From positions 1,612,001 through 1,676,000 of the forward strand of contig JAPDFW010000059.1 of the NCBI GenBank assembly GCA_028826165.1: a DNA stretch of 64,000 nucleotides, in the 5' to 3' direction. Positions 25,007 through 61,407 of this stretch are shown here, one piece after another; the first letter of the stretch is position 1; every line of letters starts with the position of its first letter. Origin of the DNA: Anaeramoeba ignava BMAN. Taxonomy: Eukaryota > Protista > Anaeramoebae. The notes beneath the pieces were generated by a model. It made no database searches, was not told the DNA's origin, and was given only the letters and a program-made list of their open reading frames with translations. A program made the translations under genes and the position numbers.

Positions 25007-27076
25007 TCATTTAATATATTCTTTCATAAATGGTTTTTTTGTTTGAATAAAAATATCAATTTCTTTCCAAAAATCATAAACAGCTGTTGTATCATGATGT
25101 CTTTTGTTTTTGCTAATTGTTAATTTCTTAACTTTCCATGAATCAACTAAAATAGGAGGTTTTATATCTTCATAACCAAAATAAATTCCTCTAACTAAAT
25201 CAAAATCAAAATCAAAATTAAAATCAAAATTAAAATCAAAATATAAATCAAAATCAAAATCAAAATCAAAATCAAAATTAAAATTAAAATTAAAATATAA
25301 ATCAAAATTAAAATCAAAATATAAATCAAAATCAAAACCAAAATCAAAATCAAAATTAAAATTAAAATTAAAATATAAATCAAAATTAAAATCAAAATTA
25401 AAATCAAAATTACCTTCATTAAATATTTCTACAGGTTTTTTCCATCTGAAATTCTTTAATTGACTTGCAGCTCCAGATGTAATTACACAAACAACCCGAT
25501 CCCAATCTCTTTTATTGATTTTTTTTGGATCATCACAAAGTTGATAATGTAATTTTGTTTGTTTTCGTGTTCGAACAATTTGAATAAATCCAAATTTAGG
25601 AATTGATCCTCCATTTTTAATATAATCTTCAGGTGCAACGAATTTTCCTTGTTCCAAAAATTTTTGAGCATTTGTACTATTGATTATACAGTTTGCAGTA
25701 TTTGGAATTATGATAATTGGCATTTGTGCTTTTTTGATTTTGGTTATTAAAATTATTATTAAAATTATTATTAAATTTATTATTAAAATTATTATTAAAA
25801 TTATTATTAAAATTATTATTAAATTTATTATTAAAATTATTATTAAAATTATTATTAAAATTATTATTAAAATTATTTATAAATTTATTATTAAAATAAT
25901 TATTAAAATTATTATTAAAATTATTATTAAATTTATTATTAAATTTATTATTAAATTTATTATTAAAATTATTATTAAAATTATTATTAAATTTATTATT
26001 AAAATTATTATTAAATTTATTATTAAAATTATTATTAAATTTATTATTAAATTTATTATTAAATTTATTATTAAATTTATTATTAAATTTATTATTAAAT
26101 TTATTATTAAATTTATTATTAAATTTATTATTAAAATTTATTATTAAATTTATTATTAAAATTATTATTAAAATTATTATTAAAATTATTATTAAAATTA
26201 TTATTAAAATTATTATTAAATTTATTATTAAAATTATTATTAAAATTATTATTAAATTTATTATTAAATTTATTATTAAATTTATTATTAAAATTATTAT
26301 TAAATTTATTATTAAAATTTATTATTAAATTATTATTAAAATTATTATTAAAATTATTATTAAAATTATTATTAAAATTATTATTAAAATTTATTATTAA
26401 ATTTATTATTAAAATTATTATTAAAATTATTATTAAATTTATTATTAAAATTATTATTAAAATTATTATTAAAATTTATTATTAAATTTATTATTAATTT
26501 AAATTGTAAATGTATCTAATTAATAAATACAGCCCTTTGGCTTAGTTGATTGAGGTGTAATAGTTGATTTGCTTGGATCTATTTTAAATCCTCCTGGCAA
26601 AACAATTGAAGATTGAGGATCATTTATAGTATGATCATTTTTCTTTATAGAATTTTTCTTTATAGAATTTTTCATTTTAGAATCTTCATCTTCAACTCTT
26701 TTAACAATTTCTAAAATATTTGAAAAATCTTTTTTTTTTGAAAGTAATATTGTTTCTTTTGTTTCAATATGCTTTTCTTTTGCAAGAATTATTCTAACTT
26801 TTTCACGATCTTTTTCAAATAATTTATATTCGTTTGTTTCAAGTGTAGTTGCACCAGAAATGGCTAAAAGAAATATTCAAATATTGGATTGAATTTTAAA
26901 TTGAATTTTAAATTGAATTTTAAAAGAATAAAAAAATAATTTCTACTCTTTCTTTTTGTTGCAATTCTTTTTGAAAGAAGAGTTTTAATTTGATTTTTAG
27001 ACATATTTTCTAAAGATATTTGATTAGTATTATCTTCTTTTTTATCTTGATTTTCATTATTTTTTAAATTTGACAT
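25007..27076 (-). CDS. CDC73: CDC73/parafibromin (Paf1 complex)
   Basis: Motifs PIIIIP..ANCIIN..NAQKFL..GKFV, DWDRVV, WKKPVEIF, VRGIYF and ISKNKRHHD..FW. Four exons; the N-terminal part is short. Confidence 0.9.
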
Positions 27077-27163: not shown

Positions 27164-29280
27164 TTAAAGAAAAAATCTTCTTCTTGAAGTGTCTAAAAGG
27201 GATTTATGATAATAAATGTATTCGCCATGAAAATAATCAAAAGTTCCTAATTGAAGAGATCTTAATTTCAAAGTGAATTGAGGACCAAGTTCTTGAAGTC
27301 TAACTTGAGTTGGACTATCGAAAATGTAACGATGAAATCTAAAGAAAATAAAGTCTCTTTGATTATGAAATGTTACAACTTGTCTTTTTTCAAAATCTGG
27401 TTGATGTGGAAATAAAGATGCAAGCATTCTTGCAATTGTATGTCCTAATCTAGTTGTAAATCGATTCAAAATTACTTCTGGATTTGAATCTACTGGTCTC
27501 CCTTTATCCTTTTTTTAAAATTTATTTTAATTTTGATTTTGATTTTGATTTTGATTTTGATTTTAATTTTGATTTTGATTTTAATTTTGATTTTAATTTT
27601 GATTTTAATTTTGATTTTGATTTCAATTTTGATTTTAATTTTAATTTTAATTTTGATTTTGATTTCGATTTTGATTTTGATTTTAATTTTGATTTTAATT
27701 TTAATTTTAATTTTGATTTTGATTTTAATTTTAATTTTACTTTCATTTCTTTTCTTCGAACTGCATTTGATATTTTGAAATGTGCAGTTGGTCCATTTGG
27801 AAGATGAATTAAAAGCATTGCATCTAAAAAGTTTAATTGAAATTGAAATTTAATTTAATTGAATTTAAATTTGGAATTTGAAATTTGATTTAACTGACTT
27901 GGTTTTTTTCGATCTTCATTTATAATAATAATATCTGTAAAATCAGCATTTGTTGCATATTTAACAATCTCTTTAATATGGTATCTCCTTCTATAATATA
28001 CTTTTGAATTTGGAATTGCTTTTTTAATATCAAACAAGAAAGGATAAATATTCTAAAATAAATTCCATAAAAATGGTTTATAAATTGATTTAAATTTATA
28101 AATTAATTTAGATTTAGATTTAGATTTATAAATTGATTTAGATTTAGATTTATAAATTGATTTAAATTTATAAATTGATTTAAATTTGTAAATTAATTTA
28201 AATTTAAAAATTGATTTAAAATTATAAATTGATTTAGATTTATAAATTGATTTAAATTTATAAATTGATTTAGATTTATAAATTAATTTAAATTTATAAA
28301 TAGATTTAGATTTATAAATTGATTTAAATTTATAAATTGATTTAGATTTATAAATTGATTTAGATTTATAAATAGATTTAAATTTATAAATAGATTTAAA
28401 ATTATAAATTGATTTAAATTTATAAATAGGATTTATAAATAGATTTAAATTTATAAATAGATTTAAATTTATAAATTGATTTAAATTTATAAATTAATTT
28501 AAATTTATAAATAGATTTAAATTTATAAATTGATTTAAATTTATAAATAGATTTAGATTTATAAATAGATTTAAATTTATAAATTGATTTAGATTTATAA
28601 ATAGATTTAAATTTATAAATTGATTTAAATTTATAAATTGATTTAAATTTATAAATAGATTTAGATTTAGATTTATAAATTGATTTAAATTTATAAATAG
28701 ATTTAGATTTAGATTTATAAATTGATTTATAAATTGATTTGGGTTTATAAATTGATTTATAAATTGATTTGGATTTTGAAATTGATTACAGTAGTTGGCT
28801 TTTTCGATGAAGTAATAAAAACTTTAGGAGTTTTTCCTTCAACAAAATAAGATGAGATTTCATCAGATTGATTATCAAGAATAATCTCTTCATCTCTTGG
28901 ATCAACAATAGTTTCATCAAATTCTCTTGTGCTATCAATTGTTTGGGGAAGTTGTTTTGGAGGAGCTTTATCTCCAAGAGTCTTTTCTAATTGTCTTCTT
29001 TTTCTCCTTTCTTTAGTTTGTTGTACTTTTTTTTCATGCTTTAATTTTTGAATATATTGACTCCGTATTTTCAATAAAAAATTATCAATTAGTTTTTTTT
29101 GTTTTGTTTAGTTTCTTTTTTATTTAAATTGATCGACTTATTTCTCATTTTATTTTGAATTGTGTTTGGGTTAAAGAATTTTTTTCTTCTTTCTTTTCTT
29201 TGTTGAGGTGTTATTTTTTTCTTTTGTTTTGGTTTTTTCATTAATTTATGGTTAGTTTTTTTAGTTGATTTTTCTGACAT
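27164..29280 (-). CDS. RPF1: Ribosome production factor 1 (Brix domain)
   Basis: Motifs [82 protein letters not shown] and RRRFFL. Five exons; intron 1 is probably AT-AC. Confidence 0.95.
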
Positions 29281-29398
29281 TCTATCTATTAATTAATTAA
29301 TTTATTTATTTATTTATTTATAATAATATTTTTAGAAAAAGAAAAAAAAAAAAAAAAAAATTTTGAAAAGAAAAAAATTTTCAATTTAAATTTTTTTT

Positions 29399-32255
29399 TC
29401 ACCAATCAAATTGATGACAATTTGGAATAAGTAATCCTCCTCTTTGATAAATCTCCATTTGTATTTTTGAGAAAGGAATCGCTTTTAATTTATTTTTTTT
29501 CGTTAAATTGTTGATTTGACCTGTTTTTAAATTTATTTTTAATCGATCTAAATTGGAAATTTTTTCATCCACTTTTGAATTTGGAACTAAATTAATAATT
29601 GGAAAAGCAGAATTAATTGCAAGTCTTTCAAAATCTGAATGAAAAGAAAAAGCTAAAATTGCTGAAATTTTCAAATTAGAAACAAGAGAAAAAAATTGAT
29701 GAGAAGATTCAGATTTGAAAACAAAAAAAGAGTTAATTAAAAGGAAAAGATTTTGTTTTGTATTTTTGAGGAAATCAAGTAAATTTTGATTTTGATTTTG
29801 ATTTTGATTTTGATTTTGATTTTCATTTTCAATTTGATTTTGATTTTGATTTATATTTTGATTTTGATTTTGATTTTGATTTTGATTTTGATTTTGATTT
29901 ATATTTTGATTTATATTTTGATTTTGATTTTGATTTTGATTTTGATTTTCAATTTGATTTATATTTTGATTTAAATTTTGATTTTGATTTTGATTTTGAT
30001 TTTGATTTTGATTTTGATTTATATTTTGATTTTGAATTTGATTTATATTTTGATTTTGATTTTGAATTTGATTTTGATTTTTATTTTGATTTTGATTTTG
30101 ATTTTGATTTTGATTTTGATTTTGATTTTGATTTTGATTTTGATTTTGATTTTCAATTTGATTTTGATTTTGATTTTGATTTTGATTTTGATTTTGATTT
30201 TGATTTTGATTTTGATTTTGATTTTGATTTATATTTTGATTTTGATTTTCAATTTGAATTTGATTTTGATTTTGATTTTGATTTTGATTTATATTTTGAT
30301 TTTGAATTTGATTTATATTTTGATTTTGATTTTGAATTTGAATTTGATTTTGATTTTGATTTTGATTTTGATTTTCATTTTGATTTAAATTTTGATTTAA
30401 ATTTTGAATTTGATTTTGATTTTCAAATTTGATTTTGATTTTGATTTTGATTTTGATTTTGATTTTGATTTTGATTTTGATTTTGATTTTGATTTTGATT
30501 TTGATTTATATTTTGATTTTGATTTTCAATTTGAATTTGATTTTGATTTTGATTTTGATTTTGATTTATATTTTGATTTTGATTTTGATTTTGATTTTGA
30601 TTTTGATTTTGATTTTGATTTTGATTTTGATTTTGATTTTGATTTTGATTTTGATTTTGAATTTGATTTAGATTTTGATTTTGATTTTGATTTTGATTTT
30701 GATTTTGATTTTGATTTTGATTTTGATTTTGATTTTGATTTTGATTTTGATTTTGATTTTCATTTTGATTTTGATTTTGATTTTGATTTTTATTTTTATT
30801 TTGATTTTCAATTTGATTTCTTTCAGATAATAAAGTTAAAAGTGGAACAAAATCTTCCTCTTCAATAACCCAAACAGGAGCAGAAATTACTAAAGATTTT
30901 GCTTGACTTTCAACTGAGCATAAACTTTCTGAAGTGAATAGTGAGCAATTTTCACAAGAAAAAAAAGAATATTGAGGAGCAGTTGAAGCATACATTTCTG
31001 GATAAAACAGTTTTGGAATTTGAAGAATTTCATTTTTGGGTGTAATAACTCCAGAAATTGCAGAAGAAACAACAGTCTCACAAGAACAGATGTAAATATC
31101 ACCATGATTAGAGATATTCTGTTGTGGATTAAGATATCCTGTACTTACAACAATTTGAGAAATGGAAAATTGGGAAAATCTTGAATTATGAGAAGTGGAA
31201 AAACCTGGATTACAAATAATTGCCCCTGATTCACAGAATATTTCAACAAGCCCTTCTTGGAGAGCTTTGAGAAAAGCATCTTTTGTTGATGGTACAATTA
31301 CTAAGATCACACCTGGTGCTATTTTCCTTTTTTTGAGAAGATGTGCGATTTTTCTCAAATCTTCTATTCTTCCATTTGAAGATGAACCAACAATACAAGT
31401 GTCAATTTTGGTTCCTTGATATTTTTGGATCGGAGAAATTTGGAACGGGAATTTTGAGTGACAAATCAAGGGAGTTGTGTTTTCTATATTGATCTCAATT
31501 TGTTTTTTATATATTTTGAGAGTATTTGAGAAACGAATTTTTGGAAGAACATGTTTGCTTTGGGAAATAGTAGTTTCTGAAGGGAAAAAAAAACTCAAAG
31601 CTTTTAGATCGGATGCGAATGAAGCCAAAGTGATCTTATCGGTGAGATTAAGAGAATCAACGTATTCACCAAAGATCTCAACGGAAGAATCGACGAAACC
31701 ATTTGGATCAATTTCTTGGACAATTTTCAAACCAACGTCTTTTGCACAAGCATTTCTATTTGGGAATCCTTTTAAAACAATTTTGACTGAATTCGGAACT
31801 TTGATCCAAGTTGATCCAGAAGAGAGAGCAAATGCAAGATCATTTTCAGATAAGCAAAGACCAAGTGCTCCAATAGCTCCAATAATGTTTATATTTGGAT
31901 CGTTTGAAACCAAAATATCCCCTGATTTTATTTTTCCCGAATCCAAAAGGTTATGTGAGCCAATACCCATTTCCACATCCAAAATCTCTGTTTTTTCTTT
32001 TGTTGAGATTTTCCTTAAACAGTTTTGAGTTGAAAAAGTGTCAGAATTTAATCCTAAAGGATCAAAATCAAAAGTGAAAAATGTTTTTGATGGATTTTTT
32101 ATTGAGAGATTGTTTGAAAGAAAATATTTTGTCAGATTTTCAGAGTTATGATCTTGAATAAGATATTTATCAATAGAGATGTTTATTATTGTATTTTTTG
32201 TTGGGATTTGAGAAGATTTAATTGAAAGAATTTTTTGAATTATTGATTGATTCAT
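29399..32255 (-). CDS. Degenerate aconitase-family LeuC/HacA + LeuD/HacB fusion (probable pseudoenzyme) with internal Q/N tract
   Basis: Large-subunit motifs GIGSH, WIKVP.SVKI, AKDV, KIDTCIVG..NGRIEDL and VVSTG. Small-subunit motifs AILAFSF..DFERLAIN and QMEIYQRGGLL. The ORFs 30423-32255 and 29399-29674 join after removing one base at ~30425. Confidence 0.75.
29786..30815. repeat. (GATTTT)n array encoding poly-(NQ) on the minus strand
   Basis: The hexamer phase is kept across ~1030 nt except for one extra base. Confidence 0.9.
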
Positions 32256-60913: not shown

Positions 60914-61407
60914 ATGCAATTTCTTACACAAAGAGTTAATCATTCAATGTTAAAAGATCAAGTTGGAAAATCTGTAAAAAAAAATAAATAAATTAAATAA
61001 AATAAATAAGATCCGTTAAAAATTTAAATTTAAAATTTAAAATTTAAAATTAATTTAATAAAGGTTCGTTTTGTTGGAAAAGTTACTCATTTACAAGGAA
61101 ATGAAGCAAAACTTTTATCACCAGATTCAGTTGAAGTTTCAATAATTAGAGAACCAAATTCTCTTAAATATTCTTCTGATTTTGTTGAAGTTGTTGGTAC
61201 TGTTAATTCAAATTTATCAATTAAAGAATCACAATTTGTAAATTTTGGAAATAATTTTGGTAAATAAATTAAATTATAAAATTAAATAAAATTAAATTAT
61301 TAAATTATAAAACTTTTTTTTTATATTTAGATTTACAAACTTATAATGAAATGCTTCAACTTTCAACTCAATTTCCAGAAATTTTTCAACCAGATAAACA
61401 AAATTGA
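60914..61407 (+). CDS. RPA3: Replication protein A 14-kDa subunit
   Basis: Spliced protein MQFLTQRVNHSMLKDQVGKS/VRFVGKV...FVEVVGTV...FGNNF/DLQTYNEML..FPEIF. Three exons; not in the ORF track. Confidence 0.88.

Follow-up and report, generated by a model that had tools for sequence, protein, structure and literature searches.

A probable AT-AC intron of the major-spliceosome type in the RPF1 gene of Anaeramoeba ignava

Introduction

In the anaerobic amoeba Anaeramoeba ignava, intron 1 of the RPF1 gene, which serves in ribosome assembly, can be drawn with either of two pairs of splice sites, AT-AC or GT-AG, which raises the questions of which pair is used and, if it is the former, which spliceosome would remove the intron. 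The gene lies on the minus strand of a genomic stretch of 64,000 nt (hereafter the window, in which all positions are given unless otherwise stated). U2-type AT-AC introns, recognized by a 5' splice site that, except at position +1, is a good one of the U2 type, account for 0.003-0.008% of introns in animals (Sheth et al. 2006, PMC1557818). Based on the reading frame, protein conservation, and the boundary of an RNA contig, we conclude that RPF1 intron 1 is very likely spliced as AT-AC and not at the GT-AG sites that lie 4 nt away. Judging from its sequence, it is probably a 77-nt AT-AC intron removed by the major (U2-type) spliceosome.

Structure and identity of the RPF1 gene

The RPF1/Brix gene of A. 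ignava comprises five exons with 993 coding nt, corresponding to 331 aa (Table 1). The hallmarks of the family are present, namely the Pfam domain PF04427, LGDKAPPK in exon 2, and NKMR(R) at the junction of exons 1 and 2. Exon 5 matches RPF1 proteins with values of 1e-42 or lower, each with PF04427, and agrees at 100% identity with P0001, an A. ignava transcript ORF in EukProt ('Anaeramoba_ignava c18514_g1_i2.p1'). Word searches of the protein collection for an A. ignava RPF1 protein over exons 1 and 2 gave only this C-terminal sequence of 140 aa. P0001 is labelled complete and begins at a Met within exon 4 (window 27741-27898), implying an in-frame stop upstream; judging from the matches of P0001, the Trinity isoform behind it probably retains intron 3. 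RPF1 is a single-copy gene in the A. ignava genome, so that RNA evidence is not confused by a paralogue.

Table 1. Features of the RPF1 gene in the window, with intron 1 drawn as AT-AC and the competing GT-AG intron in the last line
Feature	Position	Strand	Description
RPF1 exon 1	29280..29142	minus	139 nt, ATG at 29280; last base A is the first of the split Arg codon
RPF1 intron 1	29141..29065	minus	77 nt, AT...AC, phase 1, GC 16%
RPF1 exon 2	29064..28790	minus	275 nt, ends ...ITSSKKPTT; X1 RNA contig with 100% identity, into exon 3
RPF1 intron 2	28789..28053	minus	GTAATC...TTTTAG, 737 nt; removed in X1 RNA contig
RPF1 exon 3	28052..27899	minus	ends ...NEDRKKP + 1 nt
RPF1 intron 3	27898..27824	minus	GTCAGT...TTTTAG, 75 nt; frame set by homologue comparison
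RPF1 exon 4	27823..27741	minus	its Met is the start of EukProt ORF P0001
RPF1 intron 4	27740..27509	minus	GTAAAA...AAAAAG, 232 nt; missing from EukProt transcript ORF P0001
RPF1 exon 5	27508..27164	minus	Brix C-terminal part, 114 aa, stop TAA 27166-27164
RPF1 intron 1 5' splice site ATAAGT	29141..29136	minus	GT 29137-29136 (+5/+6) doubles as donor of the GT-AG model
RPF1 intron 1 CTAAT	29092-29088	minus	candidate U2-type branch site, read from the sequence
RPF1 intron 1 3' terminal AC	29066-29065	minus	context GAAAATAC followed by GG
Competing GT-AG intron	29137..29061	minus	GTCGAT...ACGGAG, 77 nt, giving NKMRNNQY

Introns 2-4 are all of the GT-AG type (GTAATC..TAG, GTCAGT..TAG, and GTAAAA..AAG, respectively). 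Introns 2 and 4 consist almost wholly of tandem repeats, with approximately 38 copies of an 18-nt unit in the former (28053-28789, minus) and approximately 36 copies of the hexamer ATTTTG in the latter (27509-27740, minus). Arrays were also observed in a neighboring gene (29783-30819, 173 copies of the hexamer ATTTTG) and in the next gene downstream (25744-26497, 63 copies of a 12-mer). The intergenic spacer behind RPF1 is very short, with approximately 88 nt between the RPF1 stop and the ATG of the next gene downstream (27076, minus).

Two in-frame pairs of splice sites for intron 1

The unspliced frame of exon 1 meets TAA after ...NKKN, and an intron is therefore required after this exon; no further GT or GC donor is present from the ATG at 29280 to the intron 1 donor. 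The minus strand reads AAT AAA ATG AGA A, followed by ATAAGTCGATC...AACTAATTGATAATTTTTTATTGAAAATAC and then GG AGT CAA TAT, just as the earlier note had quoted it for a 77-nt AT...AC segment. The intron begins with ATAAGTCGAT and ends with GAAAATAC, its termini being AT at 29141-29140 and AC at 29066-29065. Its removal gives NKMRRSQY, with an Arg codon split as A/GG and a predicted spliced junction of ...ATGAGAAGGAGTCAATAT (also given as AGAAGGAGTCAA and ...ATGAGAAGGAGTCAA). The GT-AG pair is shifted by 4 nt (29137..29061), defines an intron of the same 77-nt length that is also in frame, and gives NKMRNNQY, with an Asn codon split as AA/T and a predicted junction of ...ATGAGAAATAATCAATAT (also given as ...ATGAGAAATAATCAA). 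Thus, the two products differ in two residues, RS versus NN.

An ordinary GT-AG intron at 29137..29061, in which case the AT...AC frame would be coincidental, deserves consideration because GT-AG introns are the rule in A. ignava (32,053 of 32,108 introns, approximately 99.8%; PMC11550330) and because this one is in frame and of equal length. The earlier note had set out this alternative correctly with regard to the common length, the 4-nt shift, and NKMRNNQY, but its argument that the donor is a poor one is weaker than supposed: intron 3 uses GTCAGT, which means that C at +3 is tolerated in RPF1 and that this type of donor is in use in the same gene. On the other hand, the GT-AG acceptor would need G at -3, which is the least used base at 3' splice sites. 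The GT-AG pair would also place CGG within the last six bases of the intron, against an average of 8% GC in introns of this genome (PMC11550330).

The bare pattern ATAAGT-N60-80-TAC was seen four times in the window versus 5.0 times expected, which is chance level, and the case for intron 1 therefore rests on its context; it is raised above chance by the reading frame, by homology on both sides, and by the RNA contig boundary. A second ATAAGT...TAC match (61260-61344) is the antisense of an ordinary plus-strand GT-AG intron. Pairs shifted by one base, namely AA...TA (giving Arg-Arg-Ser) and TA...CG (giving Arg-Lys-Ser), were rejected, neither being a known functional pair and both predicting RNA contig starts other than the observed one (see below).

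Protein conservation at the split codon

The distance to LGDKAPP is identical in both splice models, so that only the two junction residues discriminate between them. We used MAFFT to align 81 distinct RPF1 N-termini, with A. ignava exon 2 as a separate row. In the alignment column that immediately precedes the start of exon 2, Arg is present in 76 of the 81 homologues and Asn in none (0/81). Among animals, fungi, plants, amoebozoans, and protists, some 70 or more RPF1 proteins of full length were found to carry the motif (I/L)(K/R)-N-K-x-(K/R)-R at the N-terminus; the end of A. ignava exon 1 fits the (P/S)xxI(K/R)NKx(K/R) of the homologues, and the split codon corresponds to the fifth residue of N-K-x-(K/R)-R. 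The earlier note had given an NKx(R/K)R...KHEK pattern for this region, in which NKx(K/R)R is correct and KHEK is just loosely conserved across homologues. As far as can be read from these sequences, the conserved Arg of NKx(K/R)R fits the AT-AC pair, and the Asn-Asn of the GT-AG pair does not: the latter would swap an Arg found in 76 of 81 homologues for an Asn found in none. The RPF1 gene model is corrected accordingly, with the near-invariant Arg kept in place of Asn-Asn.

RNA evidence for the start of exon 2

X1 was the sole public run with this stretch, and 0.54 of the sampled words were present in it, a value equal to the share of exon 2. Comparison with 28760-29330 yielded an X1 k-mer contig of 605 nt (depth 21.8, no mismatch), which spans 28790..29064 and then runs into the start of exon 3, the 737-nt intron 2 being gone. 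The joining of exon 2 to exon 3 identifies X1 as RNA. In a k-mer assembly, the point at which the sequences of spliced and unspliced RNA part company terminates a contig. Thus, the contig was predicted to start at 29064, the first base of exon 2, with the AT-AC pair, at 29060 with the GT-AG pair or with mixed spliced forms, and at 29066 or 29063 with the one-base-shifted AA...TA or TA...CG pair, respectively. Its first base is exactly 29064. This start could be an accident of coverage. Exon 1 is not among the X1 contigs and no X1 contig runs across the exon 1-exon 2 junction; the position of the donor therefore rests on the reading frame and homology. Taking the observed boundary (29064 instead of 29060) together with the conserved Arg, we regard an ordinary GT-AG intron as improbable.

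It might also be considered that both pairs of sites are used, or that assembly errors occurred at both ends of a true GTAAGT...TAG intron. No junction sequence was obtained from X1, and intron retention seems common in the A. ignava transcriptome if P0001 is a guide. However, mixed spliced forms would shift the X1 contig boundary to 29060, two independent substitutions exactly at both terminal bases are very unlikely as assembly errors, and an intron of the cysteinyl-tRNA synthetase (CysRS) gene (see below) has the same AT...AC ends. We therefore assign a very low probability to this explanation. Splicing of RPF1 intron 1 as AT-AC, which the earlier note had preferred to GT-AG, is thus backed by the conserved Arg, by the X1 contig start at 29064, and by a second ATAAGT...AC intron, that of CysRS.

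Type of spliceosome

The donor ATAAGT is identical to GTAAGT at +2 to +6, so that it agrees with the consensus of a U2-type 5' splice site except at +1. The earlier note had described this donor as GTAAGT with G1 changed to A, not as U12-type, with CTAAT approximately 25 nt upstream of the 3' end, and all of this can be seen in the minus strand. The donor context ATAAGTCG lacks the U12 box ATATCCTT, ATA alone being common to both. By direct reading, intron 1 contains no CC and hence neither TATCCTT nor a TCCTTAAC-like U12 branch site. Its sole branch-like motif is AACTAAT, in which the second A of CTAAT (29089) lies 24 nt away from the final intron base. Neither of the features that mark U12-type introns was found, i.e., a 5' splice site of (A/G)TATCCTT and a TCCTTAAC-like branch site approximately 10-26 nt from the 3' end.

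The annotation of A. ignava contains 33 AT-AC introns among 32,108 introns, 27 of which start with ATATCCTTT, the U12 box (PMC11550330 supplement), and U12-type introns of this species carry (G/A)TATCCTTT at the donor (PMC11550330). This predominance of the U12 type among AT-AC introns (27/33; PMC11550330) might suggest that RPF1 intron 1, although truly AT-AC, is a substrate of the minor (U12-type) spliceosome whose 5' splice site has degenerated; the same numbers imply that up to six AT-AC introns do not have ATATCCTTT, which leaves room for the RPF1 intron. The minor spliceosome is plausible in A. ignava, considering that a U6atac candidate (G000:C71:58882-58994; L009 1501-1613) is present in the genome and carries the conserved AAAGGAGAGA and GGUUAGCA boxes, with 29.9 bits versus an Rfam gathering score of 33. 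A search of the whole A. ignava genome with Rfam U12 and U1 gave no match; as U1 must exist, these blanks are uninformative. However, the donor of intron 1 has nothing but ATA in common with ATATCCTT and lacks the TCCTT needed for pairing with U11 or U6atac, a U12-type branch sequence is absent along with any CC, and CTAAT, at 24-25 nt from the 3' end, is at the far edge of U12 spacing. Removal by the minor spliceosome is therefore highly unlikely. RPF1 intron 1 would instead be classified as U2-type, and from its sequence we infer dependence on U1/U2 rather than on U11/U12.

If the major spliceosome removes intron 1, ATAAGT would pair at +2 to +6 first with U1, at its 5' end, and then with U6, as GTAAGT does, and CTAAT, approximately 25 nt from the 3' end, may act as the branch site. 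Because the intron ends in C, the second catalytic step would tolerate A(+1), and the A(+1)/C(-1) combination may restore the non-Watson-Crick interaction that G(+1) usually forms with G(-1).

A finder of introns based on ORFs and composition was also applied to the window and 200 kb of additional genome. Its three versions proved overly stringent or failed to outperform controls, with 132 clusters for GT-AG versus 99-244 for nonsense dinucleotide pairs.

A second ATAAGT...AC intron in the CysRS gene

The CysRS gene contains an intron of 624 nt (G000:C96; L008 1755-2378) with the ends ATAAGTTG...AAACAC. The upstream exon ends with AAT GTA ACT GAT ATT GAT GAT AAG, followed by ATAAGTTGAA, and the intron ends with ...AAAAAACAC, after which the next exon starts with ATT ATT TTA CGA. 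Removal of the AT-AC segment restores NVTDIDDK/IILRSRE, a conserved CysRS motif that has NVTDIDDK/II at the junction. No GT-AG pair was found at the same shift in this intron. The two introns are alike in the donor ATAAGT, the A-rich tract before the terminal AC, and the restoration of a conserved motif; the CysRS intron differs from that of RPF1 in being 624 nt long, filled with repeats, and free of a competing GT-AG pair.

The ordinary donors seen in RPF1, CysRS, and neighboring genes are weaker (GTAATC, GTCAGT, GTAAAA, and GTAATT). As a known rule, splice sites with a non-canonical terminal base have to be strong at their other positions, and the recurrence of ATAAGT where ordinary donors are weaker fits this rule. 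Together, the RPF1 and CysRS introns suggest that such introns need a perfect ATAAGT donor.

Origin of intron 1

The earlier note had raised the possibility that intron 1 is a converted U12 intron. We compared six RPF1 orthologues, from the metagenome contigs L001 and L003 and from Thecamonas, Capitella, Artemisia, and Tieghemostelium, and found no intron at the Arg codon in any of them; an old or U12-derived origin of this intron is thus unsupported. In Thecamonas, Capitella, Artemisia, and Tieghemostelium, the first coding exon extends well past the motif. The RPF1 genes of L001 (4124-5204) and L003 (1347-2466) are eukaryotic and 77% identical to each other, and the C-terminal ORF of L001 shares 67%, that of L003 64% identity with A. 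ignava exon 5; both coding sequences have a single interruption, located close to where intron 2 lies in A. ignava, with none at the position of intron 1. No close relatives were found in JGI metagenomes.

A tentative and rather doubtful idea is that A. ignava has moved towards AT-AC termini in both of its splicing systems. AT-AC termini are present in 27 of 32 U12-type introns versus 0 of 8-10 in A. flamelloides, its nearest relative, and a handful of putative U2-type AT-AC introns, all with the maximal donor ATAAGT (RPF1, CysRS, and possibly a LIM gene), contrasts with none in A. flamelloides. If true, the cause would lie either in a drive peculiar to this lineage, for example extreme A+T mutation pressure on position +1 with later compensation at the last base, or in a spliceosome with an unusual tolerance of A(+1).

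Comparison with known AT-AC introns

Taken together, the evidence makes it very probable that RPF1 intron 1 is truly AT-AC and belongs to the major-spliceosome type, as a new addition to a known rare class. It would provide one more natural case, from a deep-branching anaerobic protist, of the few AT-AC introns with a major-spliceosomal appearance, while leaving existing knowledge of splicing unaltered. In practice, gene finders and read mappers applied to A. ignava must permit AT-AC ends that are not accompanied by a U12 box.

Within the same genome, the U12-type AT-AC introns (27 with ATATCCTTT) have the same terminal dinucleotides as RPF1 intron 1, but the latter is without the TATCCTT box and without a TCCTTAAC-like branch site. 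In yeast, a G(+1)-to-A mutation of an intron is suppressed when the last base is changed from G to C (PMC1557818). This suppressor pair follows the same logic of pairing between first and last bases in a U2-type intron, which would explain why AT needs AC, although it concerns an engineered mutant and not a natural intron. The U2-type AT-AC introns of human SCN4A and SCN5A resemble RPF1 intron 1 in their AT and AC ends, their ATAAGT-type donor, and the absence of a U12 box and branch site, and both are very rare, with at most six of 32,108 introns in A. ignava (PMC11550330). Dependence on U1 and U2 was experimentally shown for SCN4A and SCN5A, whereas that of RPF1 intron 1 is deduced from its sequence. 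Unlike those introns, RPF1 intron 1 is short and A-rich, belongs to a metamonad protist, and occupies a position that is not found in the sampled orthologues.
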